Origin: Caecitellus pseudoparvulus
Lineage: Eukaryota; Protista; Bigyra: Bicosoecida
NCBI GenBank assembly: GCA_965644315.1
Contig: CBFFRQ010000044.1
Location: 248,001 to 312,000, forward strand
Direction of reading: 5' to 3'
Length of the DNA: 64,000 nucleotides
This document shows, piece after piece, positions 1,966-26,669 of the stretch. The translations under genes were made by a program, and so were the position numbers. Positions within the stretch are counted from its first letter, which is position 1; each line of letters begins with the position of its first letter. Under the pieces are notes generated by a model. That model did no database searches. It saw nothing but the letters and a program-made list of their open reading frames with translations, and was not told where the DNA came from.

Positions 1966-2148
1966 CATGCTGTGAGATGGCATTCGCCCCATCGCAGCCA
2001 AATTCATGTACTTCGCGCAGTCCTACCAGGGCACCCACAAGTCCCGTGAAGGTGCTGTGTGTGCCGGCTGCAGGCTGCACCAACGTGGCTGCCGTGCGGA
2101 AATTGGCTGTGCAAAACACGCTCCGCCGTGCGTTGTGTCCCTGTCGAC

Positions 2149-3771
2149 ATGCTCCCCGCCGCAAGCACCCCGCAGGGGCCAGAACACGAAAGTACTAATC
2201 GGCACCTTATTTCAGCCTCGGCTGTGCCTGACTCGCCCGTGGCAGGCACAGCGTCCCCGGGCCGTGTGGATCTGACTGCCCACACTGGCTTACGAGGTTT
2301 GTTGGCGGTGTACGTCGTCGTCTTCCACCTGTGCATGTTCGGGCCGCTGCAGTGGGACCTGCAGGGCTCTGCAATCATGCCTTTCTTCTTCTTGCTCTCT
2401 GGTTTCAGTCTCGCTGTCGTGAACACTGACCCCGACGCGCTGGCTGCCGAGGCGGCACGCAGCGCGCGGCAACGGGCCACATCCCCTCCCCGCCTGGCGC
2501 CCCTGGACTGGCAGACGTTCATGCAGAACCGCTGGGCACGTGTTGGGCCTCTGTACGTGCTGGGGAATGTGGCGGGGTTCGCGCTGACCTTCACGGGGCA
2601 TGGGAGCACGCCGCCTCAGCCAGACACCCTGGGCCCTGCCTCGGCAGTGACTGCTTCATTCACGTCAACCTTGTTTGGTGGCGCCTTTGGATTGCCACTG
2701 GATCCGCCCACGTGGACCATCGCCACGCTACTGGTGCTGTGGGCGGTGTTTCCGCTCGCGCTGCGGTGGTCCCAGAGACTGACGCGGGCAGAACTGGCCA
2801 GAAACATCGTGCTGCTGTACTGGCTGCAAGTGCTGACGATGCTGTGTTTCATTGTCTTCAGTGTGCTCACTGGCCTGGGCCAGCCCTTCATTAACGGCAC
2901 CATGAACCCGCTGTCACGAGTGCCGCTCTTCCTGATGGGAGTGCTTGGTGGCATTCTGCACCTGCACAACGCAGGGGCCGAAAGACACATCTGGCCGACC
3001 CTGCCGTTGTGCTGCACTCGATGCGCTGCGTCTGATGCGAACTCCTGCTGCGGTGATTGCGCTGGGAATGTGGACGCATGGGCAGCCGGCCTTGTGACAG
3101 CCTTCGTTGCCTTCATCATCCCCAACGTGGGCTGGGGGCTGCAGACGGGCGGAGCAGTGTACCTGCAAGCCTTTGCTCCCATGGCTCAGTTGGCGCTGAT
3201 ATCAGCCTTGGCACGGGGAGGGCAGGGCAGGGGGGAAGGCCAGGGTCCCAGAGGCAGGTGTCGGTGCAAGTCACTGCTGAGCAGCGCCCCTGCGCAGTGG
3301 CTCGGCAAGCTGTCGCTCGCCATTTACGTTGTGCACTTTCCCATCATGAACACGTTTACTTGGGCTGTAGCTGGGCAGTTGCCCGTGGACGTGGAGCTGC
3401 GCTGCGAGTCGGCGTTTCAGCCAGGCACGCTGGCAAGGAAACGCTGCGAGGATGCACGGGCAGAGTACTTTGCTGCTCGCGCTCTGCCAGTGTGGGCCAT
3501 TCTCCCCGCCTTTGTTGCTTCACTAGTCCTGGCCTGGACTGTGTACCAGCTTGTGGAAGCGCCGTGCAGAGCGCGGCTGCGGGCAGAAGCCACTCAGCGA
3601 AGTCTGCCAGAGCAGGCGGAGCTCTTCAATGTGCTGCCGACCGTGATGGAGGAGTCCCAAGAGGAATCCGACGGGGTGACATCTGCTTCCGAATCACCCC
3701 ACCTTGGGTCCACAGCTGCTGCAGGCGCACTTGTTGAACTGCCTGCTCTGCCCGCCTCTCGGGGCCCATGA
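2149..3771 (+). CDS. Acyltransferase-3 membrane O-acyltransferase, paralog 2 (tandem duplicate)
   Basis: Motifs HTGLRGLLAVYVVVFH, WDLQGS, FFLLSGFSL, NRWARVGPLY and LGKLSLAIYVVHFP, colinear with paralog 1. First in-frame ATG is at 2149. Confidence 0.85.
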   Translation: MLPAASTPQGPEHESTNRHLISASAVPDSPVAGTASPGRVDLTAHTGLRGLLAVYVVVFHLCMFGPLQWDLQGSAIMPFFFLLSGFSLAVVNTDPDALAAEAARSARQRATSPPRLAPLDWQTFMQNRWARVGPLYVLGNVAGFALTFTGHGSTPPQPDTLGPASAVTASFTSTLFGGAFGLPLDPPTWTIATLLVLWAVFPLALRWSQRLTRAELARNIVLLYWLQVLTMLCFIVFSVLTGLGQPFINGTMNPLSRVPLFLMGVLGGILHLHNAGAERHIWPTLPLCCTRCAASDANSCCGDCAGNVDAWAAGLVTAFVAFIIPNVGWGLQTGGAVYLQAFAPMAQLALISALARGGQGRGEGQGPRGRCRCKSLLSSAPAQWLGKLSLAIYVVHFPIMNTFTWAVAGQLPVDVELRCESAFQPGTLARKRCEDARAEYFAARALPVWAILPAFVASLVLAWTVYQLVEAPCRARLRAEATQRSLPEQAELFNVLPTVMEESQEESDGVTSASESPHLGSTAAAGALVELPALPASRGP

Positions 3772-5772: not shown

Positions 5773-7883
5773 ATGCCTATCGACATCAATTGGCTCCGGG
5801 ACTACAAGGGAGGCGACCCTGGTGAGCTCGTTCTTGCAGCTCGCTGCCTTCTGTGAAAGCTGTGCACGTTCCGTGCGTCCACGGCTCCTTGGCATGTGCA
5901 GAGAAGTGGCGCCAATCCCAGGCGAAGCGCTTTGAAGGACCTGAGACTGTGGACGCAGTGGTGGCCAAGGATGAGGTGTGTGGCTGGTGCGGGGAGGGAG
6001 GGTGTTGTGCCTGGTGTGCGCTCAATTTCCGCACCATGCTCTCCTGCAGGAATGGCGCGCCATCACCTTGGAGTACGAGGGCAAGCTGCAGCAGGCTGGC
6101 GTCGTACAGAAGGAGGTGTGTACAGCCATGTCTACGCCCAGGTGATGAAGCGTGCTCTCAGCCACGTCGCCCTTTCAACCTTGACGTGCAGATCACCAAG
6201 CGCAAGAAGGCCAAGGAGGATGCCGCCGACCTCATCACCTCCCTGAAGGAGCTCAAGGCAGCTGTGCCCGCCCTGAAGGCCCGCCGAGCTGAGATCGAGG
6301 CTGAGCGCGCCGTCCTGCTGCGCTGTGTGGGCAACATGGTGCACGAGTCTGTGGTGGTGAGCAAGGACGAGGCGCTGAACGAGGTGGTGTCGGAGTGGGG
6401 AGTCAAGGGGCGGCCCGCAGGCATGCCCGCTGACGCGGAGGTGCTGCACCACCACGAGCTGCTGGCCATGATCGGAGGGTATGAGCCTGAGCGCGGGGCG
6501 GCCGTGGCCGGCCACCGTGGCTACTTCTTGCGCGGCCCCGGTGTAATGCTGAACATGGCGTTGCAGGCTTACGGCGCTGCGTTTCTGCGCGCACGCGGGT
6601 ATGATCCGGTGCAGCCCCCCTTTTTCATGAAGAAGGACGTCATGGGCGGTGTCGCGCAGCTGGATGACTTCGACGAGCAGCTGTACAAGGTGTCCAAGGA
6701 CGCCCCTGCCGCAGCGGCAGCAGGCAGCGGCGGCGCAGCTGACCCCGACGCCGATGTCAAGTTCCTGATCGCGACGTCTGAGCAGCCCATCTGTGCCATG
6801 CACCAAGGCGAGCACTTCGCCCCTGCTGACCTGCCCATCAAGTACGCCGGCATTTCCACGTGCTTCCGCAAGGAGGCCGGCAAGCACGGCAAGGACGTGT
6901 GGGGCATTTTCCGCGTGCACCAGTTCGACAAGGTGGAGCAGTTCGTCATCTGCGAGCCAGACAAGAGCTGGGAAGAACACGAGCGCATGCGCCAGACGGC
7001 AGAGGAGTTCTACCAGAGCCTGGGCATCCCTTACAACGTCGTGAACATCGTTTCGGGCGAGTTGAATTCCGCCGCGGCGAAGAAGTACGACTTGGAGGGC
7101 TGGTTCCCAGGCTACGGCGAGCACAAGGAGCTGGTGTCTGCCTCCAACTGCACTGACTACCAGTCCCGTGCCATGGAAATCCGCTTGGGCCACGCCAAGG
7201 ACGCGCAGGGCAACAAGACGTACGTGCACATGCTGAACGCGACGTTGTGTGCGTGCACCCGCACAATCTGTGCGTTGCTGGAGAACGGCCAGACGCCAGA
7301 GGGCATCAACATCCCCGAGCCCCTGGTGCCGTTCTGCGGTGGTGTCACATTCTTGCCCTTCGTGAAGAAGCGCCCTCCCCCCCCCAAGGAGCAGACTAAG
7401 GGTGGCAAGGGTGGCAAGGGTGGCAAGGGCGGCAAGGGCGGCAAGGGCGGCAAGAAGAAGGCTGCTGGCGGCGAGAAGAAGGCCGCCCCTGCCCCTGCTC
7501 CACCTGCCGCTGGTGCGCCTGGCACCGAGGCAGCCCCTTCAGCGACCAGCGCCACTGCGCCGCAAGTGCCGGCAGGGTCGGCTCTGCCAGCGGAAGCGCG
7601 CCCATCTCTCAGCACCATTGACGGGCTGAAGGCCTTGGATGGTCTGCTGGCCAACACGGCGTACGTGGACGGCTTCAACCCCACAGCTGAGGACGCTGTT
7701 GTGTTTGAGCTGCTGAACGCGGAGCTTGGCGGCACGGCACCCTATGAGCGCTCATACCCCCACATGGCACGGTGGTGGGCCACGATGCAGGCACAGACCG
7801 CCGCGGAGCGTGCTGCGTGGCCGGCCACAGCCAAGCAGTTGGCCGCAGGCACCCCCACGGAGTCCCTCCTGTTCAAGGCGTGA
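5773..7883 (+). CDS. SARS1: Cytosolic seryl-tRNA synthetase with C-terminal eEF1B/GST-like domain. Exons 5773-5821, 5902-5975, 6050-6115, 6192-7883
   Basis: Spliced N-terminus MPIDINWLRDYKGGDPEKWRQSQAKRF. Class II motifs LIATSEQP, CFRKEAG..GIFRVHQFDKVEQF, KYDLEGWFP, ELVSASNCTDYQSR and HMLNATL. Three GT-AG introns keep the frame. Confidence 0.95.
7401..7454 (+). repeat. Coding 9-bp tandem repeat, (GGK)x6 linker in SerRS
   Basis: ggtggcaag/ggcggcaag repeated six times in frame. Confidence 0.85.
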
Positions 7884-7917: not shown

Positions 7918-9994
7918 TCACACGCGGATCTCATCCAGCAGGCTGGCATCGTCGTTGAGGGAGCCGAAGAGCTCCAAGTTGAACTTACCGCCAGTGGACA
8001 ACATCTTGCACATGCGGTCGATGGCAGTGGCGGCCATGACGGTTTGCAGGAACGCCTCGATGAGCTGGTCCACGCCAATGCCCAGGGTGGAGAAGTCCTT
8101 GCGGTCAGCCAGCAGCAGGCGCTCTGCCTCGGTGGTCCAGGTCAGGTCACCGGTCAGCTTGGACAGGTTGGTGCCCAGCATGCCCCAGGAAAACACCTCC
8201 CCGCCCACTTCGTCCTTGAGCGGGTCGCGCGCGCGGCGGGCATAGGCGGCCACCGGGCGCCACCCCGTTCCCGTGTAGCTCACCATCATGCGCATGTCAG
8301 CGACGAAAATGTCACCCTTGCGGTTGGGCAGGGTGCCGACGTGGTACAGGCGGCCTTCCCGCGCATCCACGCTGCCCCACGCGGCGTTTCCGATGAGCGC
8401 CTGCACGATGAACTTGTCGTAGTGGAACTCCGTCGCCATGAACTCGTCCAGCTCCTTCTTGGAGAGAATGGTGAACACACCCTGCCCTGCGTTGGAGTAG
8501 GGCACCTTGATGACGCCCGTGCCGCCGAGGGACTTGATGGCGAAGGGCACGGCCTCCTTCTGCACGTCGTGCAGGGTGGTGGGCGTCGTGATGCGCAGGT
8601 GAGAGCCCTTGGCCTCCATCTGCCCGTTGAAGTAGTCGTACGCCTTGCTGGCCATGAGCTTGTTGCGGCCACCAGCCAGGCAGGGCAGGATGGGGTTCAG
8701 GATGCGCGTGCGGGTGTGGATGGGGATGCGCGTCCAGGGGCGCTGGGTGACGTATCGGAACGCCGCACGCACTGGCAGCCACACATGCCCCGGCAGATCC
8801 AGGCTGGCAGCCGGCACCTCCACGCGCTCAGCGCCAGTGGCCTCGGCAGCGCCTGACGCAGACGCCTCTGCGTCTTGAGGAGGCAGGAAGGCCCCCGCAG
8901 GCGCTGTGGCGGAGCGCCTCTCAGTGTGGGGGGCGTCGGCGGGAATGTCTTCCTCCTTCACCCGCACCCACGCCACACGCTCCTCATCGAACACAACGGG
9001 GGGCTTGCTGTCCGTCAGGTAGAACTCGGCCATGTACACGGGCTCGCCGGCCACCTCGGACATGACGCTGGCGTACCCACTGGCCTCCATGACGTTCTTG
9101 TCATAGATGACTGCCAACACGCCCTCCACTGGGTCGCTGAGCTCGCACGAGGGCTCCTTGGGAGCGGCAGCCTCAGCGCCAGCCGAGCCGGGCGCTGCAG
9201 GCTCCTTCATGAGGTCTGCGAAGGTGGTCTCGATGAGGCGGCGGTAGCCACCGTCCTCCTCTGTCTCGCGAAGCAGGGGGAAGGACTTTTGCCCACTGGG
9301 ACAGCTGTTGGTCTCGATCACCACCACCTTGGCCTTGCCCTCCATGGTGGAGCACATGAAGGTGTCGCAGCCAGCCCAGCGGAAGAATTCTGTGGGGAGG
9401 GGTGGGCTAGCGCGCGGTGAGTGCGTGGCGCGGCAAGGAAGGCGGCAGCCGTGAGCAGAACCACAGCGGGCCTTCGCTGCGCAGATGGCTTCGACTCACT
9501 GGGCTTGTACGCGAGCAGCGTCTCCAGCTCCTCCTTGGTCACAGAGGGGTGCATGTGCGTGTATCGCTTGATGAGTTGCGCCTGTACAGGGGGCAGAGGG
9601 AGGCGCCGTGGCGAGCTAGTGGCGCCTTGCGAAGGGGGCGTCGCTCGGAGCAACTTCGATTTCCGCGCCGGCAGCCACAGAATCCTGGCCTGGCGGCAAA
9701 CCCGCCGAGTGCCCAGGCATACAGACATGTCACGCACCGGCTTCATGTTGAAGAAAGTCGCCACCATGGGGTGGATGGCTGCGTTCAGCACTCTGTGCAG
9801 GGTGGCGGGAGCTTGATGCAGCGCCTGATGCAGCAAGCGCCACCACGCCGATGCTGGTGATTGCAAGGGCTCCCCACGCACCGAGGGTAGAAGTGCTGCT
9901 CTGGCTCAAAGCCATCTTCGGGCTTGATGACCTTGGTGCTGCCAGACTTGGACTTGATTGCGGCAGTGCCGACGACGCTTGCTGCAGCAGCCAT
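7918..9994 (-). CDS. Circularly permuted ATP-grasp ligase-like protein (573 aa). Exons 9994-9882, 9792-9738, 9581-9500, 9389-7918
   Basis: Spliced length 1722 nt is in frame. ATP-grasp motifs VIKVPYSNAGQGV, FIVQALI, DMRMMV and TNL are present. The RimK-like AGxD...ExNxxP element (WAGCD...VIETNSCPSG) lies N-terminal to them. Confidence 0.8.
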
Positions 9995-10846
9995 TTCGAA
10001 GGGAGCTTGGCGGGCTGTCGTTCTGCGGCTGCACTTGCGAAGGCAAGCGTAGACCTGACCTGCGGACGGAGGCGGAGCAAAGAGTGCACTCAAGTGAAGC
10101 ATTGTGGTACATGCAACATTTGGGGCGCGTGGGTTGGGCCACAGCGCTGCTATAGCAGCACGCGTGCGGCCTAGGTACTTGTCGGCAGCGTTGGTACAGC
10201 ACATGCCAAGCAAGCCTGACGCGTTGCGCTGCGGGGGACTCACGAGTTTGGGAAGGAAAGAACGAAGTTGTTCTGGATGAAAGGGGCGGGTGCAGCACGC
10301 AGATGTGGCGGGAGAATTGGTTTTGCGCCGGGAGGAGGAAAGATCAAGTAGTCCCCTCTGCCGGCGTGGTGGCCCCCTCCACCCACACCTTCGTGCACCC
10401 CTCCGCCTTTGAACTCAGAAAAGCGGCCTCTGCGCGCCAGCCTCGCGGACACAGGGCGGTACTTGGATCGACTTTTCAATGTTTAGCGACGTGAACGACC
10501 TTGGGGTGCCCATGGGGCAGCGCCTGCTCCGTGGTGGCGGCTTGGGTGGTGGCAGGTGTCGTCTTCGCAGGCAGGCTTGGGTTAGCGAAGAGAGGATCCA
10601 TGCAGGGATCCTCGCTGCAGAGTGGAAGTCTGAGCACTTTCAACAACCCTCCAACACACAACACCCCACCATTTACACATTGGACCAAAAGCCCCTTGCT
10701 GCATCTCCCCACACTTGCTGCCAGGCGCGCCGAGGAAAGTCTGCTTCTCTTCGCTGCGCCTCAAGCCCACAGGACCGTGCTTGCACTGCACCGGGCTTCG
10801 CCAGCCTGCAGCTGAGTAGCACTCACCAACGAGAACAAACACCACA
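9995..10846. promoter_or_regulatory. Putative bidirectional promoter shared by the ATP-grasp and SPX-M14 genes
   Basis: 852-bp gap between divergent start codons with no convincing ORF. Inferred from geometry only. Confidence 0.5.
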
Positions 10847-13094
10847 ATGAAGTTTGGAAAGGTAGGTACTGCACAGCAAGCCTGGTGATGGGATCGGAGT
10901 GCTCCACTGGCAGCCTGCGTGGCGCTGCCTTCGATTTCCGCACGGCGCCGTCCCCATGTCGCTCACAGCGCCTGCGTCTGCTGGCCAAGGCCGAGTGGTA
11001 CGAAGAGTACATTGACTACAAGCTGTTGAAGCAGATCATTAATGGCTCAGGGGAAAGCTTCGCGTACGTGTGCAGATTGCCCACCACCTGGGCGCAACCT
11101 GGCTCCAGCTTACAGAACTTCCACACTTGCCGTCCCACTGCAGCATGGCCAGCGCCGAAGCCGGGGAAGGCGAGGGCATCCCGTGCACACCAGGTGGTAC
11201 AGCAGAGCTGGGTGGCGCCGGCCACCGTGCCCGGTTCGTCAAGGAGCTGAAGAAGCAGATGAACCGCAGCGCAAAGTTCATGCTGGCACAAGTTGCCATC
11301 CTCTCCACACGCGTGGAGGAGCTGCACGGGACGGTGCGCAAGGCCACCAGCGCTGGCCAGGCGGCTACTGCTATCTCGGCTGAGCTGGACCTGGAGCCCA
11401 GCGGCATCAACACGCCCAAGATCCTGCCTTTGCCAGCGCCAGCCATTCCCGACGACGGGGACAGCCCTGCAGCAGCAGAGACCCCTGCAGCGCCCGAAAC
11501 TGCGGCGGGGTCTGCTCCTTCGGAAGGCACTGTTGCTGCAGGTGCAGCTGGTGCGGCAGTGCAGAACAAGGTCGCCATCAAGGCTGTGCGGAACATGATC
11601 CAGCAGGTGGCAGACGAAGTGGAGGATTTGAAGGAATTCGCGACGCTGAACCTGCTGGCAGTGTCCAAGGCCAGCAAGAAGTGGGACAAGAAGCACTCCT
11701 CCCGCCTGGCTGCGTCCACTGACGGGCCCACCGCCGCCGAGGGCGAGGCAGGCGAGGCTGACGTGCTGGTGTGCGTGACGGCACCACTTCGCGGCGCGTT
11801 GGAAGCCTTGGCAGAGGCATCTGCCCTGAAGACATGCGCGCCCATCCTGGCACAGGCAGAGAAGGAGTGCCTGGCCATCATGACAGAGGCCGGGAGCCTG
11901 GTCAAGGGCGGCGGGCACAGCGCCGCGGCACGGGGTCGCGCAGCGCGCAAGGTGTTCGCAGATGCGGCATCGTCCGGGCAAGCCGATCCAGGTGCAGTGT
12001 CCGGCATCCCCATCGTGCACCGCCTGAAGATGTCGGAGTACCCCGTGGGAGTCACTAAGGTGCGCGTGGCAGTGGGCACCAACGCCCTCAGCGAGCCCAT
12101 GACCATCCCTGTCATCATCATCAAGGGCGCCACGCCTGGCCCCGTGCTGGGCATTACCTCTGCCCTGCACGGCAACGAGCTGAACGGCATCCCCGTCATC
12201 CACCGGGTCATGTCTGTGCTGGACCCCTCCACCATGGTGGGGTCCCTGGTGGCTGTGCCGGTGGCCAACCCGGGCGGCTTCGTGCGGCACCAGCGTGGCT
12301 TCTCCGACGGCGTGGATTTGAACCGCATCATGCCGGGCAAGAAGAACGGCAACTCAGCACAAACCTTCGCGTACAAGCTCCTGCAGCGCGTGGTGTCTGT
12401 CATGGATTACTTGCTGGACCTGCACACTGCCAGCTTTGGCCGTGTGAACTCCCTGTACGTCCGTGCCGACATGAACGTGCCACTCGTGCGCCGCCTGGCA
12501 CAGCTGCAGCAGCCGCAAATCATCGTGCACAACACGGGCCCTGACGGCTCCATGCGTGCCGCTGCAGCTGACATGGGCATCCACGCCGTGACCCTGGAAA
12601 TCGGCAACCCCCAACGCTTCCACTCCAGCTTCGTGGACCGCGCAGTTGCCGGCGTTCTGCGCACGCTCGCGTACCTCAACATCGCTAGCGAGGCGGACCT
12701 GCAGCTGCGCCAGGCAGCCTCGAGCAAGGGCCTGGCATCTGCTGGTGCCAAGCTGACTCCCAGCGAACCTCTCACGCCAGGTGCTGCGCTGACCCCGGCG
12801 CAAAGCGCGTCAGCTGCTGACCCGGTGGTGTGTGCGCGGTCCTTCTGGATCTTCACCCGGGCTGGTGGCGTGCTGTTCGTGCTGCCCAGTGTGAACACGT
12901 GGGTGCACAAGGGGCAGGTCATCGCGGAAGTGCGGAGCATTTTCGGCGAGCTCGTGGACCGCCATGTGGCGCCCATGGACGGCATCGTCGTTGGCAAGAG
13001 CGACAACCCTGTCTGTCGCTCTGGCGACCGCGTCCTGCATTTGGGCGTGCACGACCACCAGCACTTCCCTGGAACCGTGTCTGACGGCCACTGA
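10847..13094 (+). CDS. SPX domain fused to an M14 succinylglutamate desuccinylase/aspartoacylase-like zinc hydrolase (686 aa). Exons 10847-10861, 10969-11063, 11144-13094
   Basis: Spliced start MKFGKRLRLLAKAEWYEEYIDYKLLKQII and lysine cluster LNLLAVSKASKKWDK are SPX hallmarks. M14 motifs are HGNE, DLNR, LDLHT and TLEIG. A biotinyl/lipoyl-like barrel forms the C-terminus. Spliced length 2061 nt is in frame. Confidence 0.9.
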
Positions 13095-13161: not shown

Positions 13162-15458
13162 TTAAGCCCACTGCTGCCCGACGTTCGCCTGCATGCGTTG
13201 CCGGCGTGATGCGGCTTCGGGGGTTGCGTCAGCGATGCGTTTCACTGCTTGGAACAGCACCATCAGGCTGGCAGACTTGACACCGGGAACGTTTGCAGCA
13301 GCTGCAATGGTGGGTGGAGCCGCTTGGGTCAGTGACTCTTTTTCCCACGCGCTCACGCCGTGCAGGCTGCTGAAGTCGAAGGTGGCCGGAATGGCAAGGC
13401 CTGCCCCTGCACGGTACGCCTCTATGTCAGCCGCCTGCCTGTCCAGGTATGCTGCATACTTGCACTCCACCTCCACACTGGCTCGCACGTGGTGGGGCAC
13501 GGCGCTGGCTGCGAACTCCGCTGGAGTCAGGTCCGCGCTGCCACTGTGCTGAACACGCCAGGCGTCAAACGCCTGGCGCGCAGCGCGGGGAGCGGCGGGG
13601 CCGTCCACGTCACCACTCTGCACTTCGCGCTCCACCTCTCCCTGCACTGTGTGCATGACTCCCAGCACATCACCCAGGGACACGTGAGGAGCAGCCAGCA
13701 TCTCGGCAGCGGTGGAGTACGAGCCGTTCTGGGCCGTGCGCACGCCCCGTGCCTGCCAATCATGCGCTGATAGAGAAAAGCCCCCCAAGCGCTGCATGGC
13801 AACGGTGACGTCCCGCCTGCGCCGGTTGAAGACGGCCCAGCGGTGGTCATCGACGAGCCCGGCTTCCCGCCCCAGTGGTGTCAGGCGCTCGTCGGCGTTG
13901 TCAGCACGCAGGGTCAGGCGGAACTCCGAGCGACTCGTGTACATGCGGTACGGTTCTTTGACACCGACTGTGATCAGGTCGTCGATGAGGGTGCCAATGA
14001 AGCTGCTGGAGCGGGGCAAGACGAGCTCGCGAGGTGCCTGGTCCCTCCGCTGCGCCACCGCAGCCAGCCCGGCATTGGCCCCCGCCACAACGCCCTGGGC
14101 TGCCGCCTCCTCGTACCCCGTCGTGCCGTTGATCTGGCCTGCCAGGAACAGCCCCTGCACCGCCATGGACTGCAGGGTGGGGCGCAGCATGCGGGGGTCC
14201 ACAAAGTCGTACTCAACCGCATAGCCAGGCCGAACCATGTGCACGTTCTCCAAGCCAGGAATTGTCCGCAGCATCTGCAGCTGCAAGTCGGGGGGAAACG
14301 ACACTGTGGCACCATTGGGGTACACCAAGGGCGTGTTCAGCCCCTCTGGCTCCAGCCACACCTGGTGGGACTCCCGGTGCGGAAAGCGAACAATGCGCTT
14401 GTCCAACGACGGGCAGTTGCGGGGACCGATGCCGGCACCGTCGTTTGCAACGAAAGAAGGCAGCTGATGCAGGTGCTCCCGCACCAGTGCGTGCGTTTCT
14501 GCTGTCGTGTGAGTCAGGTGGCAGGCGTGCAGCCGGCCAGCGTTGGTTGGCGCCATGCCGGCATGCAAGAACGAGAAGAGCTCTGGCGGGTCGTCAGACG
14601 GCTGTTCCACTAGCCCCGCGTAGTTGATGGAGGCGCCATCAAGGCGAGGCGGCGTGGCGGTGGTCAGGCGTGCCATGGGCAGCTTGAGGCCCTCCAGGGT
14701 CGACGCGATGGCGACGGTGGGCGGCTCCACTTCATCGCTGCTTCGCACGTGGCGACCTGCCGGGTACGACGCTCGCCCCACGTGCACGACACCACGCAGG
14801 AAGGTGCCTGTCGTCAGCACCACCTGCTTGGCGTGGATTTCCTCTCCTCGCCCCGTGCGCACCCCCACCACCTGCGGGGTGTCGGTCCCCCTGTCACTGG
14901 GCGAGTGCAAGATCAAGTCATCCGCTGAGTCACCCCACAGGGCCAGGTGGGGTGTGGCCGCCAGCTCGGCTTGCATGGCTTCCCTGTACTGGTCTCTGTC
15001 ACACTGGGCACGTGGGCCGTGCACAGCAGGCCCCTTCCGGCGGTTTAGCACTCGGAATTGGATGCCGGCGGTGTCTGCCATGCGCCCAATGAGGCCTCCC
15101 AATGCGTCAATCTCCCGCACCAAGTGCCCCTTGCCGATGCCACCAATGGCAGGCTGCATGCAGAGGGGGGGCATTGGTGTGCTTTCGCGCCTGGGGACTC
15201 GCCGGCGCCGCAAGCACTTACGTTGCACGACATCTCGCCTACAGTGCTCACGTTCTGGGTGAGCAGGACCGTGCTGGCGCCAGTGCGAGCTGCTGCCGCG
15301 GCTGCTTCGCACCCTGCATGGCCACCGCCAATGACAACCACATCACAATGTTTGATGGACTCTGGCATGGCGCTGGAAGCTCTGCTCCAGCTTGGCGGGC
15401 TGAAGACAGCGCGCCTGCCCTGCAGGGCGAAACGAGCACGTAACGCTGCACACGCCAT
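13162..15458 (-). CDS. MTO1: Mitochondrial tRNA U34 modification enzyme MnmG/GidA/MTO1. Exons 15458-15222, 15153-13162
   Basis: [20 protein letters not shown]|[41 protein letters not shown] and [14 protein letters not shown]. Arg/Ala/Ser-rich N-terminal transit-like peptide. Confidence 0.95.
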
Positions 15459-17929: not shown

Positions 17930-20900
17930 TCATTTGCACTGTGCGTGGGCTGACAGAGTGCGTTGCAGGACGCTGCAGTGCTGCAGCAGCGCAGCGAGCA
18001 GGGTTCGTGAAACACCCGCATTTGCAGGCAGTTCTGACGCGTTACGCACCTGCTGTGCGGCTTCGCGAGCCATGCCAGGCGTGGGAGCAGCAAGCACAGC
18101 AGCCGTGAGGGTGAGGAGAACGCGCAAGGCCGCCCCCGCTTTTCCACACAAGGCTTGCAGGGGCAGCGTGATGGGCGCCGAACGGTTTCCGTTCGCAGTC
18201 GCACACTCGCTCAGCAGCGGCACTGGGGCCTTAAGCCAAGCGCGGAGAGGCAGCAGGGCCCGCGTAGTGCACGCGGTGGTACTTGCTGGTGCGAGGGTGT
18301 GGGGGCAGGTCAGGCCGTGCTCGCACAGGCGTGCGATGATGGTGGGTGTGTGGTCCCCAAAAGCACGCTGGTCGCCGCCGAGCAGCGCCAGAGCTGCGAC
18401 CAGAACTGCCACGGGCAATGCCGACGCCAGAAGTGCGCGGAGGTCATAGTCCAGTCTGACCAAGGCCGTTGCCATCAGCGGCGAGGCCTGGGCGCGCTGG
18501 CCTGCCAGCGTGTGCAGGATTGCAGGGCTGGCTTCGGCAGCTGCGAGAAACGCCTCGCTCGCAGCCAGCGTCGGCGCGCCACGCAGCACGGCCGACGCCA
18601 TGCAGTGCAGTTGCAGGGCAGAAAGCAGGGCAGGCGCTCCACGGAGCACAGCCTCGGCCTCGTCTGGCAGACAGGTGGGCAGGGGGCACGTGCGAGCCCG
18701 CAGCAACACCATGCCCTGCCGCGAAACGCGCTCCATTGGCAGGTCGCTTTCGCGAAAGTCGGGCGTGCCGGGCTGTAGCAGGTGCCCATGCATGCAAGCC
18801 AACACCTGTACAGACGCTGCCATGGTGCTTGTCAGCGCACCAAAGCGCTGGCGTGTGCTCAGCAGAGTCTGCACTGCGGCAGTATTTCTGTGCAGGCCGC
18901 TCGCCCGTCGATCAGAATGCACAAATCCCAGCAGAGCATGCAGTGCAACGCCCCATGCCACGCATGCCTGTGCCGACTCGGCACAGGCTTTGTCCTCTTC
19001 CCATCCAGCAGCGGCGTCGAGGAACGCTCGCCCTGCGGTAGACAGCACTGCCAGGACAGCTGCCATTCTTGCACCACCACTTGCGGCCACAAGTGATACT
19101 TCGTCTTCGTACAACGCGAACAAGTCCTGGGGATCAGGTTGCACCGCAGAAGTGCAGGCCATGCGAGGCCACTGGGGGAGTGCACTCTGAGCTTCACCTG
19201 ATAGAGTGCTGGCCAGGAGCACACCTGGGTCCAGGGAACTCAAAGTGTCGATTGTCTGCGGTGTGGCAGGCGCTGAGACAGGTTGCAAGCACGACTGCAA
19301 GGCGCACAGGAGGGTACACAGGTCATGGGCGCCTTGCTCTAGGCGTACTTCTTCACGCAGGGCCGACAGCAAGCTCGCTGCTGCCTCTTGCAGCCCTGCC
19401 TGCTGCGTGGCACGTTCAAGCTCAGCTAGCAACTTGGCAGTTGAACCAGGCATCGCCTCTGGTGATGTCTGTGCGGCCTTCTCCGGGTATGCACCTCTCA
19501 ACACACGGTGGCACCGGCACACTAACCACAGCACCTTCTGGATCTCAGGCGCCAGGCGTGCTTGCACCTCCGCCGCCTGGGTCAGCCCTACATAGTCTAG
19601 TTCAGCCAGCAACTCAGGAGTTGCGCACATGGCGCCCAGCAAGCTTCCCTCGCGTTGCTGCCAGATCAGAGGCCGACGGGCCGCAGTGAGAGTGTGTGCG
19701 ATGAGGTCATGCACCAGCTGGGAGGGAGCCAGTGTCTTGGGGTGGCGCGTGTAGCGCCGGTGGCGCAACACTTCCCCGCCCAGGCTGCTGCGAACTACCA
19801 TGCCGCGTGCGACCTCCAAACTGCAGAGGGAGCCCTCCTCAGCAGATGAGTCACCCTGTACAAGCTCCTTTCCATCAAGAGTTACCTGCTGTGTTTCTAC
19901 GTTGGGGTGTGTTGCCGGTGGGTATGCCAGCGCCTGGTGCGCCAGAGCCGTTCCATGCACTGCTTCCAACTGCTCCTGCGCAAACCTCGCCAATTGCTGC
20001 AGGGTTGCAAGTGCAATCTGTACTGGGCGGATACAAGCGACAACTCCTGAGCCTGAACTAGCTTGGCACTGCCCGGTACCGAGGTGTAGACTGCTGAAGC
20101 CCAAACCCGCCGCAGCATCCAGCGAACGACTGGGTTCTTCTCCCAGCACAGCTTGAAGTGACTCTGAGCAGTCTTGGCACGCGGAGCGCAGTGCAAGTGC
20201 GGACGATTCCCCACCCCGCAAGAATAGCAAGCTCGGCGAGGCAAGTTGGGGCCACAGCCAGGCGGGAAGTGGCAGAGCGGCGCCGCTTGCGCAGGGGCTC
20301 ATTCGAAGCCGGCGCAGACAGCTAGCGCCCCACGCGCCCAGCTCACGCAGGGCACCGCGCAGCGCAGGTATAGAACCATCGCTGTGTGCAGTGCTGTGCA
20401 ACATGGCACATGCAACGATGTTCCCCACAGTTCGGCACTGGCCCCACACGCTGTGTTGAACGGCAGAAATCTGCTTGGCAGACAAGTCGCCCTCGCCGGA
20501 CGTGTCGAAGGCTGGTGCCAATGCCGTGGCCAGCTGTGACTCGGCCATGTGTAGGTGTTGCAAGCACTCACTCCACGCGGATGGGCCTGTGTCATCCTGC
20601 GCTGGCTGGTCTCCACTGCCTTGCAGGGTGGACAGCTGAGAAACGGCTGCCGTCGCCGCAGCAAAGTGTGCTGTGACTGCCAGGGCTGCCACGTGGGCAG
20701 CGGCACCAGCAACAGCACAGGAGACGAGGGACACTGTGCGTTCCCCGCTTACTACGAGCTCATCGGCCTGCGCAGTGTCCTCTGCAAACGCTGCGGCGCG
20801 GAGGCGCCTGGATGCCGCGATCAGCGGCTGCACACACTGCAGTCTTCGCAGGGCCAGTTTGGCGTGGGCACCGTGTGTTCCGGCGAGCAGAACCACCTCA

Positions 20901-23900
20901 CCAGAGCCAAGGTCATGTACAGGCGATACAGTCTGGTACAGGGCGCCAGGCATGTTGCTCAGGAAACACAGGGCGTGCAGGTGCGCCGCGCCGAACAGCA
21001 GCGGCAACAAGGCCGGGTGCAGGGGTCGGGAAGGCCGTTGCTCCGCCTCTGCAAGGCCACCTTGGCCATCTTCACTGCAAGACAGGAAATCTGCAAGCTG
21101 TGATGGTCGGCTCAGAAGCGGAAAGGACAGAGGAGGCGCGGATGGGGAGGGGGGGGCGCCTGCAGTCCAAGACTGTTCGCAAAAAAGCGGCAGCAGAGCG
21201 ACCGCAAGCTCACCTGGCGCCGCGCGTGCACAATGAAAGCTCCTGAGAACGCACGTGGCGCCATCCAAAGCGTGGCTCACTGCATGGCTCACAGATTGCA
21301 AGCCGTCGTGTGAGGCGCAGGCGGGGGGGGCGCCGCCCTCCATCGGCATGGCCAGCTCAGAATACAGTGTTTGAGCTGAGCTGCGCAGTGCATGCTCAGC
21401 GCGGGTCAAGTGCTGCTTGGCTTCGTATAGGCGCGTCTGGAGCACACGGGTGCTGGTGCAGTGGACGGTCTCCAGGCACGCCGTGGGCGGCTCTGCCCCT
21501 GGCAGGCACTGCCCGTGCCATGCAAACTCAGCAAGCGCGTGGAGAGGCAGCAGCATGCCAGCTGCGCAGGTACCTCGCTCAGCCTGGGCGACATCAGTTA
21601 AGGAAGGCCCCCCTTCCTCATCATCTGTCGTGTCGTCGTCGCTACCGACAGAGTCGCTGCTTTCGCCGTCTAGGTCTGCGCAGGCCGCTCGCACTTCGTC
21701 ACGAACGCAGCCTGGCAGAACACTCGCGGGATACGGCGCAGCACTCCACCAGGCCAGCTGTGGGAAGGCAGCATCCAGCTGGTCCCCTCTGAGCATGGCG
21801 TGCAGCACACGCGCCAGCTCAGCAGGGCAGTGCTCGCTGTGTGCGAGACTGCGGGCTTGGCTGGCAAGACCTGCACGGTAGGTCAGCGGCAGCTCTGCGC
21901 ACGCAAGCGCAGCATGCAGCAAAAGGGCAGCCGCACCATCCACAGCCTGCTGCAGGGCCTCCATGGCGCACAGCAGTGCTGTGGCACTCTGGACTTCGCC
22001 CTGGGGGAGGCTGACCGAGAATTTTCGTCCCAGTGCGTCGCCCTGTGCCAGGGCATCCCGCAGCTGAGCAGCGTCCCACGCCAGGGCTGCTTGCATGATG
22101 GCAAACTCCACATGCCGCACAGCTTGAATGCGCGTGATACGGTCCCGTGGCGACTCTGTCGAGCCACGCTCGTCTCGTGGCGGCAGCGAGTGCTGTCGAC
22201 TTGGGGGCGAGGCGTCACTGGTTGCAACCACCGCTTCTCCGTCGGCTGGTTGAAGCGCCAGGACAGCTGGCCGCACCAGCCCTATGTGTGTGGCATACTG
22301 CAGCAGCGCTTGCAAGGACTGATCGCTGCTGTCCTTGTCAGCTTCGCCACCTGGCGGGGTGGCCTGGTCACCAGCATGCCTTGCTGATTGTGCTGCCGCC
22401 TCCAACTCCGCCGCCACGCGTTGGCGCTCCATCACCAGCGCCTCAAGCCACGCCATGGCTGTGATCAGGGCCCTGGACACATTGTCTAGGCTGGTGCATG
22501 TCCGGGACACATGCTGAGGGAGCTCTGGGAGCTCCTTGAGTGCCGTGCGGGCTGCCGTGGAAAGCACACGCGGGTGTGTTCGTCGGCCAGGTCTTGCATC
22601 TGACGCCCCACCTCCAGAGCCAAGCTCAGCCAGGGCATGCGTGACGCTGCAAATGCTGGCTGGGGTGGCAGTAGCCAGCAGGGCTTTCAGTGTGCTCACG
22701 TGCTCGGGTCGCACCTCCCCCTCTCGCAAGCTGCTGGCGAGCACTTGCGACATGCCGACCAGCTCAAGGGCTGCCGCTTCGTGAGGGGCGAGGGACGACG
22801 CAGGTGCGCCTTCATGGCTGACTTCGGTGAAGAGAAGGCTCTGTGTGCACGCAGCGAGGCGACCAGCCCACATGAGGCGTCGTGAAAGGCTGAGGGTGGA
22901 GGACTCCGTTCTGCCGGCTGCCACGACCCTGGCCGGCACACTTGCTTGTGTCAACGCCACCCACCACGCTGTCAGGCGACGCCGGACCAGAAAACCCCTG
23001 GTCCAGCGCTGGACACACTGTGCCGCTGTGTGCTGCCGCAAGTCCATGAGTCCTTGCAGCACTAGCGCTCCCTGGCAGGACAGGTGCAGTTGCTGTGCTT
23101 CGGATACCACTGCCGTTGTCGCTCCCAGACCGAAAACTGGGAACAGTGTCGCCAGCACTGGCACCAGTTGTGTGCAGTCACCGCTGTGCAGCAAGTGCAA
23201 GGCTTCGTCGCAGGCCCGTCGTGACAGGCGTTGGGGAGCAGCCCACCGCCCCAGCGCTTTGAATGTGCCCTGTCGCCGAGCTCGCTGCGCTTCGGCACGC
23301 AGCAGCCTGCGCAAGGACAAGCGCGTTTCATCGTAGGCTTGCTGGAGGGGCAGGCAGAGCGGCAGGCCTGCCCGCAGCCACACGCCTAGCGCGAGCACTC
23401 CAGAGTCCGTCAGGTGTGCTAGCCTGCGCTCCACTGTACTGGACTCTTCGCTGAGCGGAGCGAGGCACAGCACGCCGGCGATCTGCATGCCTGTCACACG
23501 AGCAGGGGGGGTATCCTGGCCAACTGCACTCCAGGCTAGCTCCAGCGTGGAGGGGTGGGCCCACCAATGGCCGGTGCGCCGACGCAAGCACTCCGCTTCT
23601 GTCGGAACAGCCGGCAAGAGCAACAAGCCCCTGCTCGCAGGTGCACCAGTTCCACGTGGTTCACGGGTGCTGTGTGGAGTGACAGTCTGCGACCTACGTC
23701 GTGTGGGGTGAAGCGGCGCGGCTTGCGCTGGGGCGCCAAGTGTCCCCGCCCCGACCGCTGACAGGGCCGGGTTAGACGTGCTCCGGCGCTTCAAGTGATG
23801 GTGTGGGTGATTGGAAGCATCGGTTTGCGCCCAGGCTGTCGCAGGTGACGACGTCTCGCCTTCATGGAAGCATGCAAGGCAAGGGTGCGCTGCAGGAGCC

Positions 23901-26669
23901 AAGAGCAGAGCGGTTTCAGCGTCTGGCAGCGCAGTGCAGCCTGCCAGCACCCACTGAGATACGTCATACGTTGCAGGGCCGTTCCAGTGCATCACAGTGA
24001 CTCCTCGCACCGCTCGAGGTGATTTCGATGCTGCGACCATGCCAGACACTGCAGCGGCGAACGCAGCAGCTTCGGCAGCGCATGCGTCTGCGATGCTCCC
24101 TTCCGTGGGTATGGCCTGCTTGGGAGCGAACGAGCGTGGCACGGCCGACGCACGGCGAGCGGCTCGCATCCCCCTGGCTGACGCAGACATCGGTCCACCG
24201 GCGTGTGCTGCGTGGGTGGGCCCATCCCGGAGCCAGGCTCGTGGAGAGCTCACCCGCGCGCAGTGCTGGGCAAGACACTGCAGGATGCCAAGGGAGGGAG
24301 ATGGGTCCCCCTCCTGCCCCTCCACACTCCACGTGTGGCAAGCTGCAAAGGCGCCTTGAAGACGGGCGGCGTGTGCCGGCCACATAACACAGCGCTGCAG
24401 CGTGGTGGCCCGAAGTGCGTCACTGTGTGAGCGAGCCGCGAGTGATAGGCTTGTGTGCGTCGAACTCGCCACGGGCGGCAGGTGCAACTGCACCTCAAAG
24501 GGGTCAACGACGCGCAAGGTTTGGGCACTGCCAGGCGCCGCAACCTTGCGCAATGTTCGTGTGATGCCCACCGAGAGGCGGCCCAGGAGCCAGGAGTGTG
24601 CGGCACGAAGCAGCGCGGTTGCCAGCGCACGGCACCGCAGGTGGGCCTGGGGCGGCGCCAGAGGAGTGCTGGTGACTTCCCCACTCGTCTCCACACACTG
24701 CGTTGCACTGAGGAAGTGACTGAGGGCTGCAGCGTCCACCCCCAGCAGCCTGGCCGCAGCGGATAGGTGGGACGGGTGTCGATTCCCTCGCGCCGCTGCA
24801 AGGAAGCTGGACGCCCGAAGACGTGAGGATGGGGGCCCGCCTTCTTCAACTTTGTGTTCTGAGTGGTCCCTGCCTGCAGATACCCACAGTGGGTTGTGTA
24901 GGGGCGAGTCACTGTCCTTCAAGGGCGCGACGAAGGTGCTGTGAGTCGTCGGCCGGCTTGACACTGACGTGCTGCGTTGTGTGTTCCGAGTGGAGTGCAC
25001 GCCGCTCGCACACAGCTGACTCAGGTGGATGGCAGCTGCCAGGACTTGCAGGGTCCCCCGCACGCCCTGCTCGTCGCAACCACACGCTTGCAGACAGTGG
25101 AACAGCGCCAGAAGTTCCTTCGCTGCTTGTGGCGATGCGACGGTGCTGCTGCTAGCCCCCCGCGTCTCCACACCCCATACATCTTGCAAAGTGGCGCCGT
25201 GAGGCAAGCACAGGTGCAGAAGAGTTCGGCTGAAGTTCAGGTGGGGAGGCAGGTCGCCTTGCGACGTAGCATACGGACCGCCTGGTCGCAGGGCGTGTGC
25301 TGCATAGCAGCAGGTCGCATGCAGCATGGCCAGGAGGGGACTGAGGGCGAGGATGCCACCCTGGTCTGGCGTGCCCCATGCTGCGTTTCGAGCGACGTCC
25401 CATGTTGCAGTGACTCCCACACACTTTGGCAAGACAGCGGTGTCAGCTCCTCGCCTTCGCGCGGCTGCAGCGGAAGTCGGCACATGCCCGAACACCAAGT
25501 GAAGCGACCCCGACAGCAGGTCTGTTCCACACAACACCCGGCGGAGGGTAAGGTGCAGGTGGGGTGGGGTGTTGCTGGAGTCATCGTGTGCTTGCATGCC
25601 GGGTGCGTTGCTCAGCAGTGCCGCGACGAAGCTGGGCGCAGTGCATGGGTGCCGCTGTGGGAGCAGCAGTTGGTGGAAGGCGATGGAGACTTGGGGCATC
25701 TTATGTCTCTGCTGCGTTGCGTCCTCAGGCTGGTCTGCCGGCGGCATTGCGATGCGGTGGGCCCACCCACTCCGCGCACTGCCCAGCCACGCCCACGCCC
25801 GCGCAGCCAGCTTGGGGAGGGGGGCGGCAGGGCTGTCAGCGGGAAGGAGGAGGCTCCCTGGCCCCAGCTGTACGCCAGGTGTGGCGGAGTCACCCTCCGT
25901 GCTGCGTTTCAGCGCGTATGCCAGTGCCGGCGCGCTGACGCAGGGCAGCAGCGCGCTCAGGCTTGCGCCTTCCTGGCTGTGCAGTGGGCAGAGCTCGGGC
26001 ACCCTGGCAGTGAGGACACCCTGAGCAGGTGCTGTGCTTGCGGCGCCATCGTGCACTGTCAGGCCACCCTGGTCGTCCACTGCCCAGTGTTGCTGCGATG
26101 CGAGGGCCGGAGCCCAGCCCTCGCAGCTCTCCCTCAGCACGGCAGTGGGTGGCTTGGCTGTGGGGAAGGAAGTGCGTGCGAAGCGTTGGAACAGATAAGT
26201 GCTGAGTGGATTGGGCATTGTTGCCCACCGCCCGCATGGCCTAGCGAGCCAGGCAGGGGCCCAAACACGCACCTGGCTGGGACTGGGCGCTGCGAAACGC
26301 AGAGTCGAAACGCCGCTCCACATCGACCGTGCCCCACGCTCGGTGCAGCCTCGCCAGGAGCCGCTCTTGCAAGCCATGCCATGGTGCATGTGAATCCTCT
26401 GCACCATCCACCCCAACCACGTCTTCTCGTCTTGGGAGAGCGGTGAGAGGTGCAGGTGCACCCTGCTGAGTGCGAGCGAAGCGGGCGTGGTGTCGACCCT
26501 TCACCCGCAGACCACCCTGGGCAACGAGGCCTCGCCCCTCGCCACCGCCAGTCGTGGACGTGGAGGAAAAGGAAGAGCCCGAGTCACTGTCTGAGTCACT
26601 GCCGCCCAGCGCAGCTCGCCGCCGCCGCAGCTGGGCGGCCAAGTGCGCGTGCACCGCGCCACCCTGCAT
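17930..26669 (-). CDS. Very large (over 2800 aa) protein with a degenerate myosin motor-like region and an IQ motif. 5' exon structure uncertain
   Basis: Uninterrupted ORF 17930-26461. Myosin-like segments occur in the correct order: LQVLAAAIHLSQL, AARLLGVD...QA...ALATAL...WLLGRL, VMHWNGPATYDV, LCLAP, LTDSGVL...RAGLP, then the IQ motif AAQCVQRWTRGFLVRRR. No GESGAGKT P-loop seen. Candidate start ATG 26669 needs an intron that was not resolved. Confidence 0.6.

Follow-up and report, generated by a model that had tools for sequence, protein, structure and literature searches.

A head-to-head gene pair encoding an ATP-grasp-fold ligase and an SPX-fused AstE/AspA-type hydrolase in Caecitellus pseudoparvulus: a candidate make-and-break module for a small amide compound

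Gene structures and transcripts at the locus

We analyzed a window of 64,000 nucleotides from the marine eukaryote Caecitellus pseudoparvulus, whose DNA is GC-rich; in it, two genes, designated A and B, lie head-to-head with start codons exactly 852 bp apart (Table 1). Spliced transcript contigs defined gene A on the minus strand (ATG at 9994, stop at 7918, 573 aa) and gene B on the plus strand (ATG at 10847, stop at 13094, 686 aa), and these transcript-defined start codons bear out the divergent spacing that had been read from open reading frames. The core of gene A is a 479-aa ORF (7918-9357, minus strand), which is lengthened by three short upstream coding exons, the outermost coding over 9882-9994. 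These exons were set by GT..AG joints in spliced metatranscriptome contigs together with exon-wise translation; the joint 9389/9500 was seen in contigs of runs X1, X2, X4 and X6. Exon 3 lies between introns 9390-9499 and 9582-9737, both GT..AG, and its peptide agrees with the family consensus RI..RYCHLHP.V. A further intron (9793-9881) separates exon 2 from the first coding exon, which contributes 37 codons from the ATG (9994-9992) and ends ...PEDGFEPEQHFYP. The 5' UTR of gene A is also spliced (contig joint 10057/10242, cut +2), and the contigs have a loose end at about 10298. Gene B consists of a 15-nucleotide first exon (10847-10861, encoding MKFGK), a second exon (10969-11063) and a long third exon, separated by introns 10862-10968 and 11064-11143.

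Spliced contigs of both genes were present in the same metatranscriptomes. The original prediction of a co-transcribed module was not upheld, as the genes yield separate spliced, divergent mRNAs whose known 5' ends are about 350 bp apart; therefore, they can have at most a bidirectional promoter region in common. The gap between these 5' ends showed zero depth in the metatranscriptome contigs, and a search of it for a P1BS motif and for notable repeats found neither. We presume that it is a shared bidirectional promoter. In a whole-genome search, gene A and gene B were each single-copy in the 30.6 Mb genome.

Table 1. Features of the gene A and gene B locus, with positions counted from the first letter of the window.
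Feature	Position	Strand	Basis
Gene A last and largest coding exon, 489 aa plus stop	7918..9389	-	ORF, splice joint, translation, invariant columns
Gene A coding exon 3, peptide AQLIKRYTHMHPSVTKEELETLLAYKP	9500..9581	-	Contigs, translation
Gene A coding exon 2, peptide VLNAAIHPMVATFFNMKP	9738..9792	-	Contigs, translation, family alignment
Gene A first coding exon and part of 5' UTR	9882..10059	-	Contigs, translation
Gene A 5'-UTR intron 10060-10243 (GT..AG) and upstream UTR exon	10060..10298	-	Contigs, splice sites
Gap between known 5' ends of the two divergent transcripts	10299..10650	.	Depth table, contig pieces
Gene B SPX domain, exon 1 through early exon 3	10847..11693	+	Profile search, translation, residue pattern
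Gene B exon 3, 649 aa plus stop: remaining SPX, low-complexity linker, hydrolase	11144..13094	+	ORF, contigs, translation
Gene B AstE/AspA catalytic (M14-like) domain	12135..12674	+	PF24827
Gene B C-terminal beta-rich domain, start approximate	12900..13091	+	Alignment with bacterial partners

Fold of the gene A protein and domains of the gene B protein

Gene A gave no match in Pfam, NCBIfam or PDB in sequence and profile searches. Its fold was modelled on a bacterial orthologue, P0016, which is 47-55% identical to the window protein; the AF2 model (pLDDT 89, pTM 0.91) has the three-domain alpha/beta ATP-grasp fold. Foldseek matched this model to many ATP-grasp ligases with probability 1.00, and Foldseek and VIA returned ATP-grasp amide ligases only. 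The best VIA match was 3k1t, an ATP-grasp-type gamma-glutamylcysteine ligase, with Z 17.5 over 326 aligned residues; it was followed at Z 12-14 by LysX/ArgX, GspS, YjfC/YgiC, Ddl, glutathione synthetases and RimK. Small-molecule ligases account for the top fold match and for most of the matches over the full length. An Atlas language-model feature search placed gene A with GshA and YheCD/TTL-type ATP-grasp clusters (similarity 0.91-0.94). Judged on its modelled fold alone, gene A is predicted to encode an ATP-grasp-type ligase, and the ligase-like character first proposed for it holds at this level only.

Family A has an invariant E, N and K in the motifs IE(T/N)NSCPSGQK and VKVPYSNAGQG, which are putative Mg/ATP-binding residues. 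All three lie in the last exon of gene A, in IETNSCPSGQK (E at about 9313-9315, N at about 9307-9309) and in the conserved motif VIKVPYSNAGQGV (K at about 8506-8508). The E-x-N motif is N-terminal to the part that aligns with the classical enzymes (model residues 142-452), whereas the alignments with glutathione synthetase and GspS begin near model residue 19 and thus cover it. Eukaryotic glutathione synthetase has a permuted order, with which the placement of E-x-N in family A agrees. The model suggests an ATP-grasp fold of the glutathione-synthetase, GshA or glutathionylspermidine-synthetase type. Clustering at 50% identity gives about 930 clusters for this large family, whose members in bacteria, fungi and protists are strongly conserved: identity is 65-74% among fungi and about 47% between bacterial and eukaryotic sequences. 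Even so, Pfam has no entry for the family, and its source records say just "hypothetical protein". Gene A carries no recognizable sensor domain.

The predicted sensor lies in gene B, which was correctly read as an SPX domain joined to an M14-like AstE/AspA hydrolase. Pfam PF03105 scored below its cut-off of 27.8 bits, both exon by exon (23.7 bits over profile positions 280-332 and 17.8 bits over 12-30) and in the whole-genome scan (24.9 bits); full-length homologues of gene B bear precomputed PF03105 annotation. Following the initial MKFGK, the spliced model has Y22 and K26 in exon 2 (...YIDYKLLK...) and a lysine cluster, KASKKWDK (KxxKKxxK), at 11667-11690. These residues agree with the PBC/KSC pattern tabulated for Vtc SPX domains (PMC9911596), and both motifs recur in the L005 and Rozella homologues. 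The SPX domain of gene B thus has a complete predicted inositol-pyrophosphate-binding surface. In this it resembles Vtc4 polyP polymerase, Gde1, Pho81, Pho87/90 and XPR1, in which an output domain is fused to an N-terminal SPX domain whose surface shows Y22/K26 and KxxKKxxK. Unlike in those proteins, the output of gene B is an AstE/AspA amidohydrolase, for which phosphate chemistry is not obvious. No paper found in our literature search mentions an SPX-AstE/AspA amidohydrolase architecture.

The catalytic domain was matched by PF24827 (AstE_AspA_cat) at E 6.1e-30 and 104.6 bits against a cut-off of 25, and the whole-genome scan agreed. The catalytic residues are intact in HGNE (H 12168, E 12177), DLHTAS (H 12423) and TLEIG (E 12597). 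In the hydrolase alignment, H38, E41, H123 and E181 are invariant, and HGNE, DLHTAS and TxExG occur in all eukaryotic and bacterial members; from general family knowledge, we take HxxE...H to be the zinc ligands and the last Glu to be catalytic. The C-terminal domain has the pattern GG.L.V...AP.DGIVVGKS...G.R.LHLG, common to the bacterial partners. Gene B fell below the NCBIfam equivalog cut-offs for DoeB (42.8 vs 402.7 bits) and aspartoacylase (21.7 vs 180), and the AstE equivalog gave no match; by these scores, it is a distinct subfamily apart from the AstE, AspA and DoeB equivalogs. Its hydrolase domain is 43-46% identical to bacterial A-linked hydrolases.

Linkage of the two genes across genomes

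Hundreds of bacteria, as well as the fungus Rozella, carry family A and an AstE/AspA-type hydrolase side by side. Among informative Saprospiraceae loci, the two orthologues were adjacent in 63 of 68, in the order A, GshB-like ligase, AstE. In a second bacterial phylum, 29 of 30 loci had AstE no more than 1.5 kb from A, and the two genes could be co-directional, divergent or convergent; with orthologues called at E <= 1e-90, the hydrolase was present in 54 of the 56 genomes with A and in none of the 245 without it. The bacterial genes are co-directional and adjacent, sometimes overlapping, and the core module comprises just A and the hydrolase. A GshB-like ligase follows A in Saprospiraceae and in operon L123, which also encodes an MFS efflux pump; these GshB-like partners score far under glutathione synthase cut-offs. 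No conserved small carrier or target gene was found in the operons with A and the hydrolase.

Rozella and a related metagenome contig have the same head-to-head pair of A and SPX-fused hydrolase. The original prediction knew of no described eukaryotic system of this kind; our literature search found no paper describing the pair, but the layout is not unique, as Rozella shares it. SPX-AstE fusions and family A are widespread in early-diverging fungi and several protist groups. In most fungi having both genes, they lie on separate contigs, and in Cafeteria, Plasmodiophora and Linderina no A was found within 8 kb of the SPX-AstE gene. AstE does not adjoin divergent members of family A.

Eukaryotic gene order usually carries no functional meaning, and together with the unlinked genes of many fungi this would allow the two genes to be unrelated neighbors in the window. 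We consider this highly improbable, because two bacterial phyla keep the genes adjacent, in several arrangements, the second phylum shows near-perfect co-occurrence and Rozella has the same head-to-head pair. The pairing exceeds chance because both genes are single-copy in the window genome and the pairing recurs widely elsewhere. The conserved adjacency sought in bacteria and fungi is clearly present, the proposed functional pairing is borne out, and the functional link between A and the hydrolase is strong. Since the pair is shared by hundreds of bacteria and Rozella, both enzymes almost certainly work on one amide compound.

Chemistry of the pair and its control

We propose that A and B together make up a two-enzyme module that is old and functionally coupled. 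Gene A would use ATP to convert a carboxylate to an acyl-phosphate and couple this to an amino acid through its amino group, yielding a small N-acyl amino acid or pseudodipeptide, and the zinc amidohydrolase of gene B would break the same kind of bond. In eukaryotes, the SPX fusion would allow cellular phosphate status to switch the hydrolase and hence the turnover of the compound. We assign a probability of roughly 0.5 to this reading, make-and-break of a small amide compound with the hydrolase under SPX phosphate control. Its logic would be like that of E. coli glutathionylspermidine synthetase/amidase (Gss; PDB 2io7-2ioa, 3o98), in which the ATP-grasp ligase falls in the same structural subgroup (Z about 13), a hydrolase opposes it and the amidase is the regulated half. 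However, the halves of Gss are fused, its amidase is a CHAP cysteine enzyme where the pair has an M14-like zinc enzyme, its control works through oxidation instead of an SPX sensor, and sequence similarity is not detectable.

The bacterial operons may also be read as a pathway of consecutive steps, in which an N-acylated precursor is cut by the hydrolase to give an amino acid or acid, which the ligase, joined in bacteria by the GshB-like ligase, builds into another product, or in which the order is reversed, with SPX gating entry. Co-directional and sometimes overlapping genes in one operon are the usual sign of such steps, the operon can also include a second ATP-grasp ligase and an efflux pump, and the known AstE and DoeB enzymes are catabolic. 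Antagonistic pairs are likewise commonly linked or fused, as are glutathionylspermidine synthetase/amidase and cyanophycin synthetase/cyanophycinase, and a core of just two enzymes leaves no intermediate step in most genomes; we regard consecutive steps as unlikely. The order A then GshB-like ligase also echoes the two-step logic of GshA and GshB, and GshA (PF08886; PDB 3k1t) is the best structural match of gene A. Nevertheless, PF08886 gives no match on gene A, glutathione synthesis lacks an obligatory AstE partner, and fungi carrying A also possess canonical glutathione enzymes.

The ligase might instead modify a conserved protein by attaching amino acids at its C-terminus or on a side chain, with the M14-like enzyme trimming the tag and SPX tying it to phosphate. 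RimK, LysX/ArgX and TTL enzymes add amino acids to proteins, M14-clan enzymes include protein deglutamylases, and CCP deglutamylases reverse TTLLs, so that TTLL/CCP (M14D) and RimK/RimB offer the same logic of ATP-grasp writer and peptidase eraser. RimK and LysX/ArgX are among the structural matches, a TTL/YheCD-type cluster is among the Atlas feature matches, and family A is unusually conserved. However, sequence does not place family A with TTL or RimK, the hydrolase is of the AstE/AspA type rather than CCP, and the AstE/AspA branch is, to our knowledge, known for small N-acyl amino acids only. Small-molecule ligases make up most of the full-length matches and include the best fold match, the operons have no conserved small carrier or target gene, one of them holds an efflux pump, and a protein substrate is not indicated for the pair. 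A tag on a protein therefore seems still less probable than consecutive steps. Because the closest relatives of A and of the hydrolase have small-molecule substrates, and an efflux pump is part of one operon, we lean toward a small N-acyl amino acid or pseudodipeptide as the product rather than a polymer or protein tag.

Small compounds of this class have known ligases and hydrolases. RIMKLA and RIMKLB (NAAG and beta-citrylglutamate synthases) are ATP-grasp ligases making small anionic N-acyl amino-acid compounds, and animal ASPA is an AstE/AspA-family zinc enzyme that hydrolyses an N-acyl amino acid but does not cleave RIMKL products. These resemble the proposed pair in combining the same two kinds of enzyme; unlike the pair, the ligases are RimK-family and Pfam-detectable, the genes are unlinked and SPX is absent. 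Cp1B of fungal E-64 biosynthesis (PDB 9cjn), which has a glutathione-synthetase-like ATP-grasp fold and was annotated as a hypothetical protein until characterized, joins a dicarboxylic acid to an L-amino acid (PMC12568646). Cp1B is a structural neighbor of gene A, and its product class is what AstE-type enzymes cleave; however, it belongs to another family (Foldseek TM about 0.37) and to a secondary-metabolite cluster without a hydrolase or SPX partner.

A more specific and doubtful version of our make-and-break reading is that the compound is an anionic N-acyl amino acid or pseudodipeptide, e.g., a polycarboxylate of the beta-citrylglutamate or N-succinyl-amino-acid type. It might serve as a phosphorus-free cellular anion, metal chelator or exported phosphate-mobilizing agent, its level being set directly by inositol pyrophosphates via the SPX-gated hydrolase. 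If so, eukaryotic phosphate signaling would have a new output branch, inherited from a bacterial two-gene module. The strict partnership of A and the hydrolase gives a concrete route to a new metabolite or modification, and, with the SPX-fused hydrolase, the few outputs under SPX control would come to include an amidohydrolase. The module would tie phosphate signaling to nitrogen or organic-acid chemistry in early-diverging fungi (among them chytrid pathogens and Mucoromycota) and marine protists.

Conservation as strong as that of family A is seen more often in enzymes whose substrates are conserved macromolecules, and it counts against a small-molecule substrate. In bacteria, co-expression of a synthetase and its own hydrolase from one operon would be futile unless regulated, and such an operon suits consecutive steps equally.

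A putative phosphate-responsive ligase/hydrolase pair

We postulated that gene A, encoding an ATP-grasp-fold ligase-like protein on the minus strand, makes an amide that gene B, a zinc hydrolase of the AstE/AspA type fused to an SPX domain, cleaves under phosphate-dependent control; as the best joint reading, we assign it a probability of about 0.5. Protein A would be an ATP-dependent carboxylate-amine ligase yielding a small N-acyl amino acid or pseudodipeptide, B would act as a zinc amidohydrolase on the amide bond formed by A, and in eukaryotes the SPX domain would allow the hydrolase to respond to inositol pyrophosphates, hence also to the phosphate status. Of known working systems, the nearest is the E. 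coli glutathionylspermidine synthetase/amidase, in which an ATP-grasp ligase of A's structural subgroup is tied to an amidase, the regulated half. Pairs of ATP-grasp ligases and hydrolases, as well as SPX-fused outputs, are already known kinds. Within the searchable open literature, no description was found of the ligase family (family A, i.e., gene A and its orthologues), of the hydrolase subfamily or of the SPX-amidohydrolase architecture, and no text there connected SPX to succinylglutamate desuccinylase, aspartoacylase or ATP-grasp; an earlier mention of ATP-grasp/AstE operons is possible.

Linkage of family A to the hydrolase genes

The original prediction had treated the two genes as one module, and their adjacency proved to be conserved in bacteria, in 63 of 68 informative Saprospiraceae loci and 29 of 30 loci of a second phylum. 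Among 80 fetched Saprospiraceae loci, 63 carried a same-strand AstE gene downstream of A, usually with a GshB/RimK-like ligase gene between them; 12 of the 17 loci without AstE were cut by contig ends, which left 68 informative loci. One bacterial locus (L123) has the operon order A, MFS efflux pump, AstE and GshB-like ligase. In another (L111), the AstE and A genes share 29 nt, read in different frames, at 2910-2938, and this overlap suggests translational coupling. Operon organisation in bacteria favours a sequential pathway, in which the two enzymes would not act as antagonists; we consider this alternative unlikely. Long open frames at L111 and at a further locus, L113, were rejected as fusions, and no Rosetta-stone fusion of A with AstE or SPX was found among the long family A members. 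One long A protein with an RFC-like AAA region is probably a merged gene model and not a true fusion.

In the second phylum, AstE lay within 1.5 kb of A in the 29 linked loci, in co-directional, divergent and convergent arrangements; the linkage outlasts rearrangement, which argues for selection for it. Family A was present in 56 of 301 sampled genomes. An AstE orthologue (E <= 1e-90) occurred in 54 of these 56; among the 245 genomes lacking A it occurred in none, their best matches being 1e-77 or weaker. The genomes are phylogenetically non-independent. The window hydrolase domain is 43-46% identical over its full length to the bacterial A-linked hydrolases. Two divergent family A members (P0346 and P0307) are not adjacent to AstE and lie in other genomic contexts.

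The assembly of the window organism contains one A and one AstE_AspA gene, and the two adjoin. For two given single-copy genes, we roughly estimated chance adjacency at ~2 in 10^4, assuming ~10^4 genes; a merely fortuitous arrangement of A and B is very improbable. Conserved adjacency was also found in fungi, as Rozella allomycis has SPX-AstE and A head-to-head, ~294 bp apart, and a metagenome contig from a relative of the window organism shows the same head-to-head layout. No A was found within 8 kb of the SPX-AstE loci of Cafeteria, Plasmodiophora and Linderina. In ~10 fungi with both genes, A and SPX-AstE lie on contigs whose recorded lengths differ and are thus unlinked. In a quick tree, one branch (SH-aLRT 98) divided all eukaryotic from the bacterial A sequences, and the window A grouped with non-fungal eukaryotes. 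On several independent counts, A and the hydrolase are linked.

Domain composition of the hydrolase and the ligase

Exons were taken singly, and natural full-length homologues stood in for the spliced proteins in searches and folding. Exon 3 of gene B matched PF24827 (AstE_AspA_cat) above the cut-off (E 6e-30), and the SPX domain is split, with its N-terminal part on exon 2 and its C-terminal part on exon 3. The spliced product begins MKFGK and has Tyr 22, Lys 26 and then the cluster KASKKWDK, matching the Y22/K26 and KxxKKxxK pattern described for Vtc SPX domains, where it marks their phosphate-binding and lysine surface clusters (PMC9911596). Gene B scored far under the cut-offs of the AstE, AspA and DoeB equivalogs in NCBIfam and is therefore placed in a separate subfamily. 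The motifs HGNE, DLHTAS and TxExG, which in this enzyme family provide zinc ligands and a catalytic glutamate, were invariant in the alignment of eukaryotic and bacterial relatives.

The SPX-AstE fusion was present in fungi (Kickxellomycotina, Mortierellomycota, chytrids, Basidiobolus, Pneumocystis and Saitoella) and in protists (Cafeteria, Plasmodiophora, Spongospora and Balamuthia); close AstE homologues with no SPX match on record occur in Fonticula and Hondaea. Six proteins from chytrids and Amoeboaphelidium (P0205, P0224, P0227, P0229, P0230 and P0238) have AstE_AspA fused to HutD (PF05962) and not to SPX; both kinds of fusion occur in at least Cladochytrium and Phlyctochytrium bullatum. 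A scan of the window organism's genome gave one further SPX match only, above the Pfam cut-off, on contig C30 at 555257-555956; on this showing, SPX proteins are few in the organism.

Gene A had no match in Pfam, in NCBIfam, in a PDB phmmer search or in a PDB search with the family profile. Family A comprised more than 3,600 matches in a word-indexed search (928 representatives at 50% identity), with members ~485 aa long. These occur in Saprospiraceae, other Bacteroidota, the second phylum (reached via a record deposited as Deltaproteobacteria) and many eukaryotes. Where a source supplies a name, it is uninformative and nearly always "hypothetical protein". Proteins 62-74% identical to that of Rozella were found in early-diverging fungi, among them chytrids such as Batrachochytrium, Mortierellomycota, Mucoromycota, Glomeromycota and Zoopagomycota, and in the aphelids Paraphysoderma and Amoeboaphelidium. 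Physocladia obscura has tandem family A paralogues (P0406 and P0431) with adjacent locus tags on one 34-kb contig.

The AlphaFold model of a bacterial orthologue, P0016, was confident (pLDDT 89, pTM 0.91), and among the matches listed in structure searches with it, all were ATP-grasp amide ligases. A putative ATP-grasp-type gamma-glutamylcysteine ligase (3k1t) aligned over 326 residues with a Z of 17.5; LysX/ArgX, glutathionylspermidine synthetase, YjfC/YgiC, D-Ala-D-Ala ligases, eukaryotic glutathione synthetases and RimK had Z values of 12-14. Another structural neighbour, Cp1B, formerly annotated only as "hypothetical protein", is a ligase of a dicarboxylic acid and an amino acid. The LysX/RimK similarity, together with the extreme conservation of family A, favours a protein-tagging system, which we regard as less probable still than a sequential pathway. 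Classical ATP-grasp enzymes cover only residues 142-452 of the model, and glutathione synthetase and GspS start at about residue 19. Eukaryotic glutathione synthetase has a permuted ATP-grasp order. The invariant E-x-N motif of family A, IE[T/N]NSCPSGQK, lies N-terminal to model residue 142, a position that would be compatible with this permuted order.

Gene models, transcripts and neighbouring genes

The window, from contig 44 of a 30.6-Mb assembly, has a GC content of ~64% and is eukaryotic, with short GT..AG introns; the stretch is present in seawater metatranscriptomes. In the ORF listing, gene A appeared as 479 aa at 7918-9357(-) and gene B as 674 aa at 11070-13094(+). Compared with its aligned homologues, the 479-aa ORF of gene A is short of ~95 conserved N-terminal residues, which are supplied by three short upstream exons. 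Both gene models were fixed by spliced joints within 7900-13100 in contigs from four metatranscriptome runs, the splicing proving RNA origin, and a scripted check found canonical splice sites and uninterrupted reading frames in both genes.

Features of the A/B pair and its flanks (window positions)
Feature	Position	Strand	Details
Acyl_transf_3 membrane acyltransferase ORFs, two in tandem	4-1965, 2059-3771	+	upstream of pair
Seryl-tRNA synthetase	5853-7883	+	convergent; stop 35 bp from gene A stop
Gene A coding exons	9882-9994 (ATG 9994), 9738-9792, 9500-9581, 7918-9389	-	573 aa
Gene A 5' UTR	to at least 10298	-	UTR intron 10060-10243; spliced contigs
Gene B exons	10847-10861 (ATG 10847), 10969-11063, 11144-13094	+	686 aa
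MnmG/GidA tRNA-modification enzyme	13162-15312	-	downstream; convergent with gene B, 68 bp between stops

Exactly 852 bp separate the two ATG codons, as predicted. The genes had also been predicted to be co-transcribed, which was not borne out; transcription is divergent from a shared upstream region, with 5' ends at ~10298 for gene A and at or before 10651 for gene B and ~350 bp without coverage between them. Both genes were expressed in the same metatranscriptome samples. No P1BS motif (GNATATNC) was found anywhere in the 64-kb window, and the region between A and B held short repeats only, at chance level. Many synonymous-looking differences between runs suggest that several strains of the organism occur in the sea. 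Run X4, from a related strain (contigs 95-99% identical), has an extra T at 9993, directly beside the gene A start codon.

The neighbours had no obvious functional tie to the pair. The seryl-tRNA synthetase is extended at its C-terminus by a tail that holds a (KGG)n/Lys-rich run and matches weakly as Arc1p_N-like (GST-C-like), and the 3' ends of its transcript and that of gene A probably overlap; MnmG/GidA is presumably organellar. Farther downstream, a single 2,843-aa ORF at 17930-26461(-) had no Pfam match at E <= 1e-4, and beyond it the GC content climbs to 0.73 at ~28-30 kb of the window.
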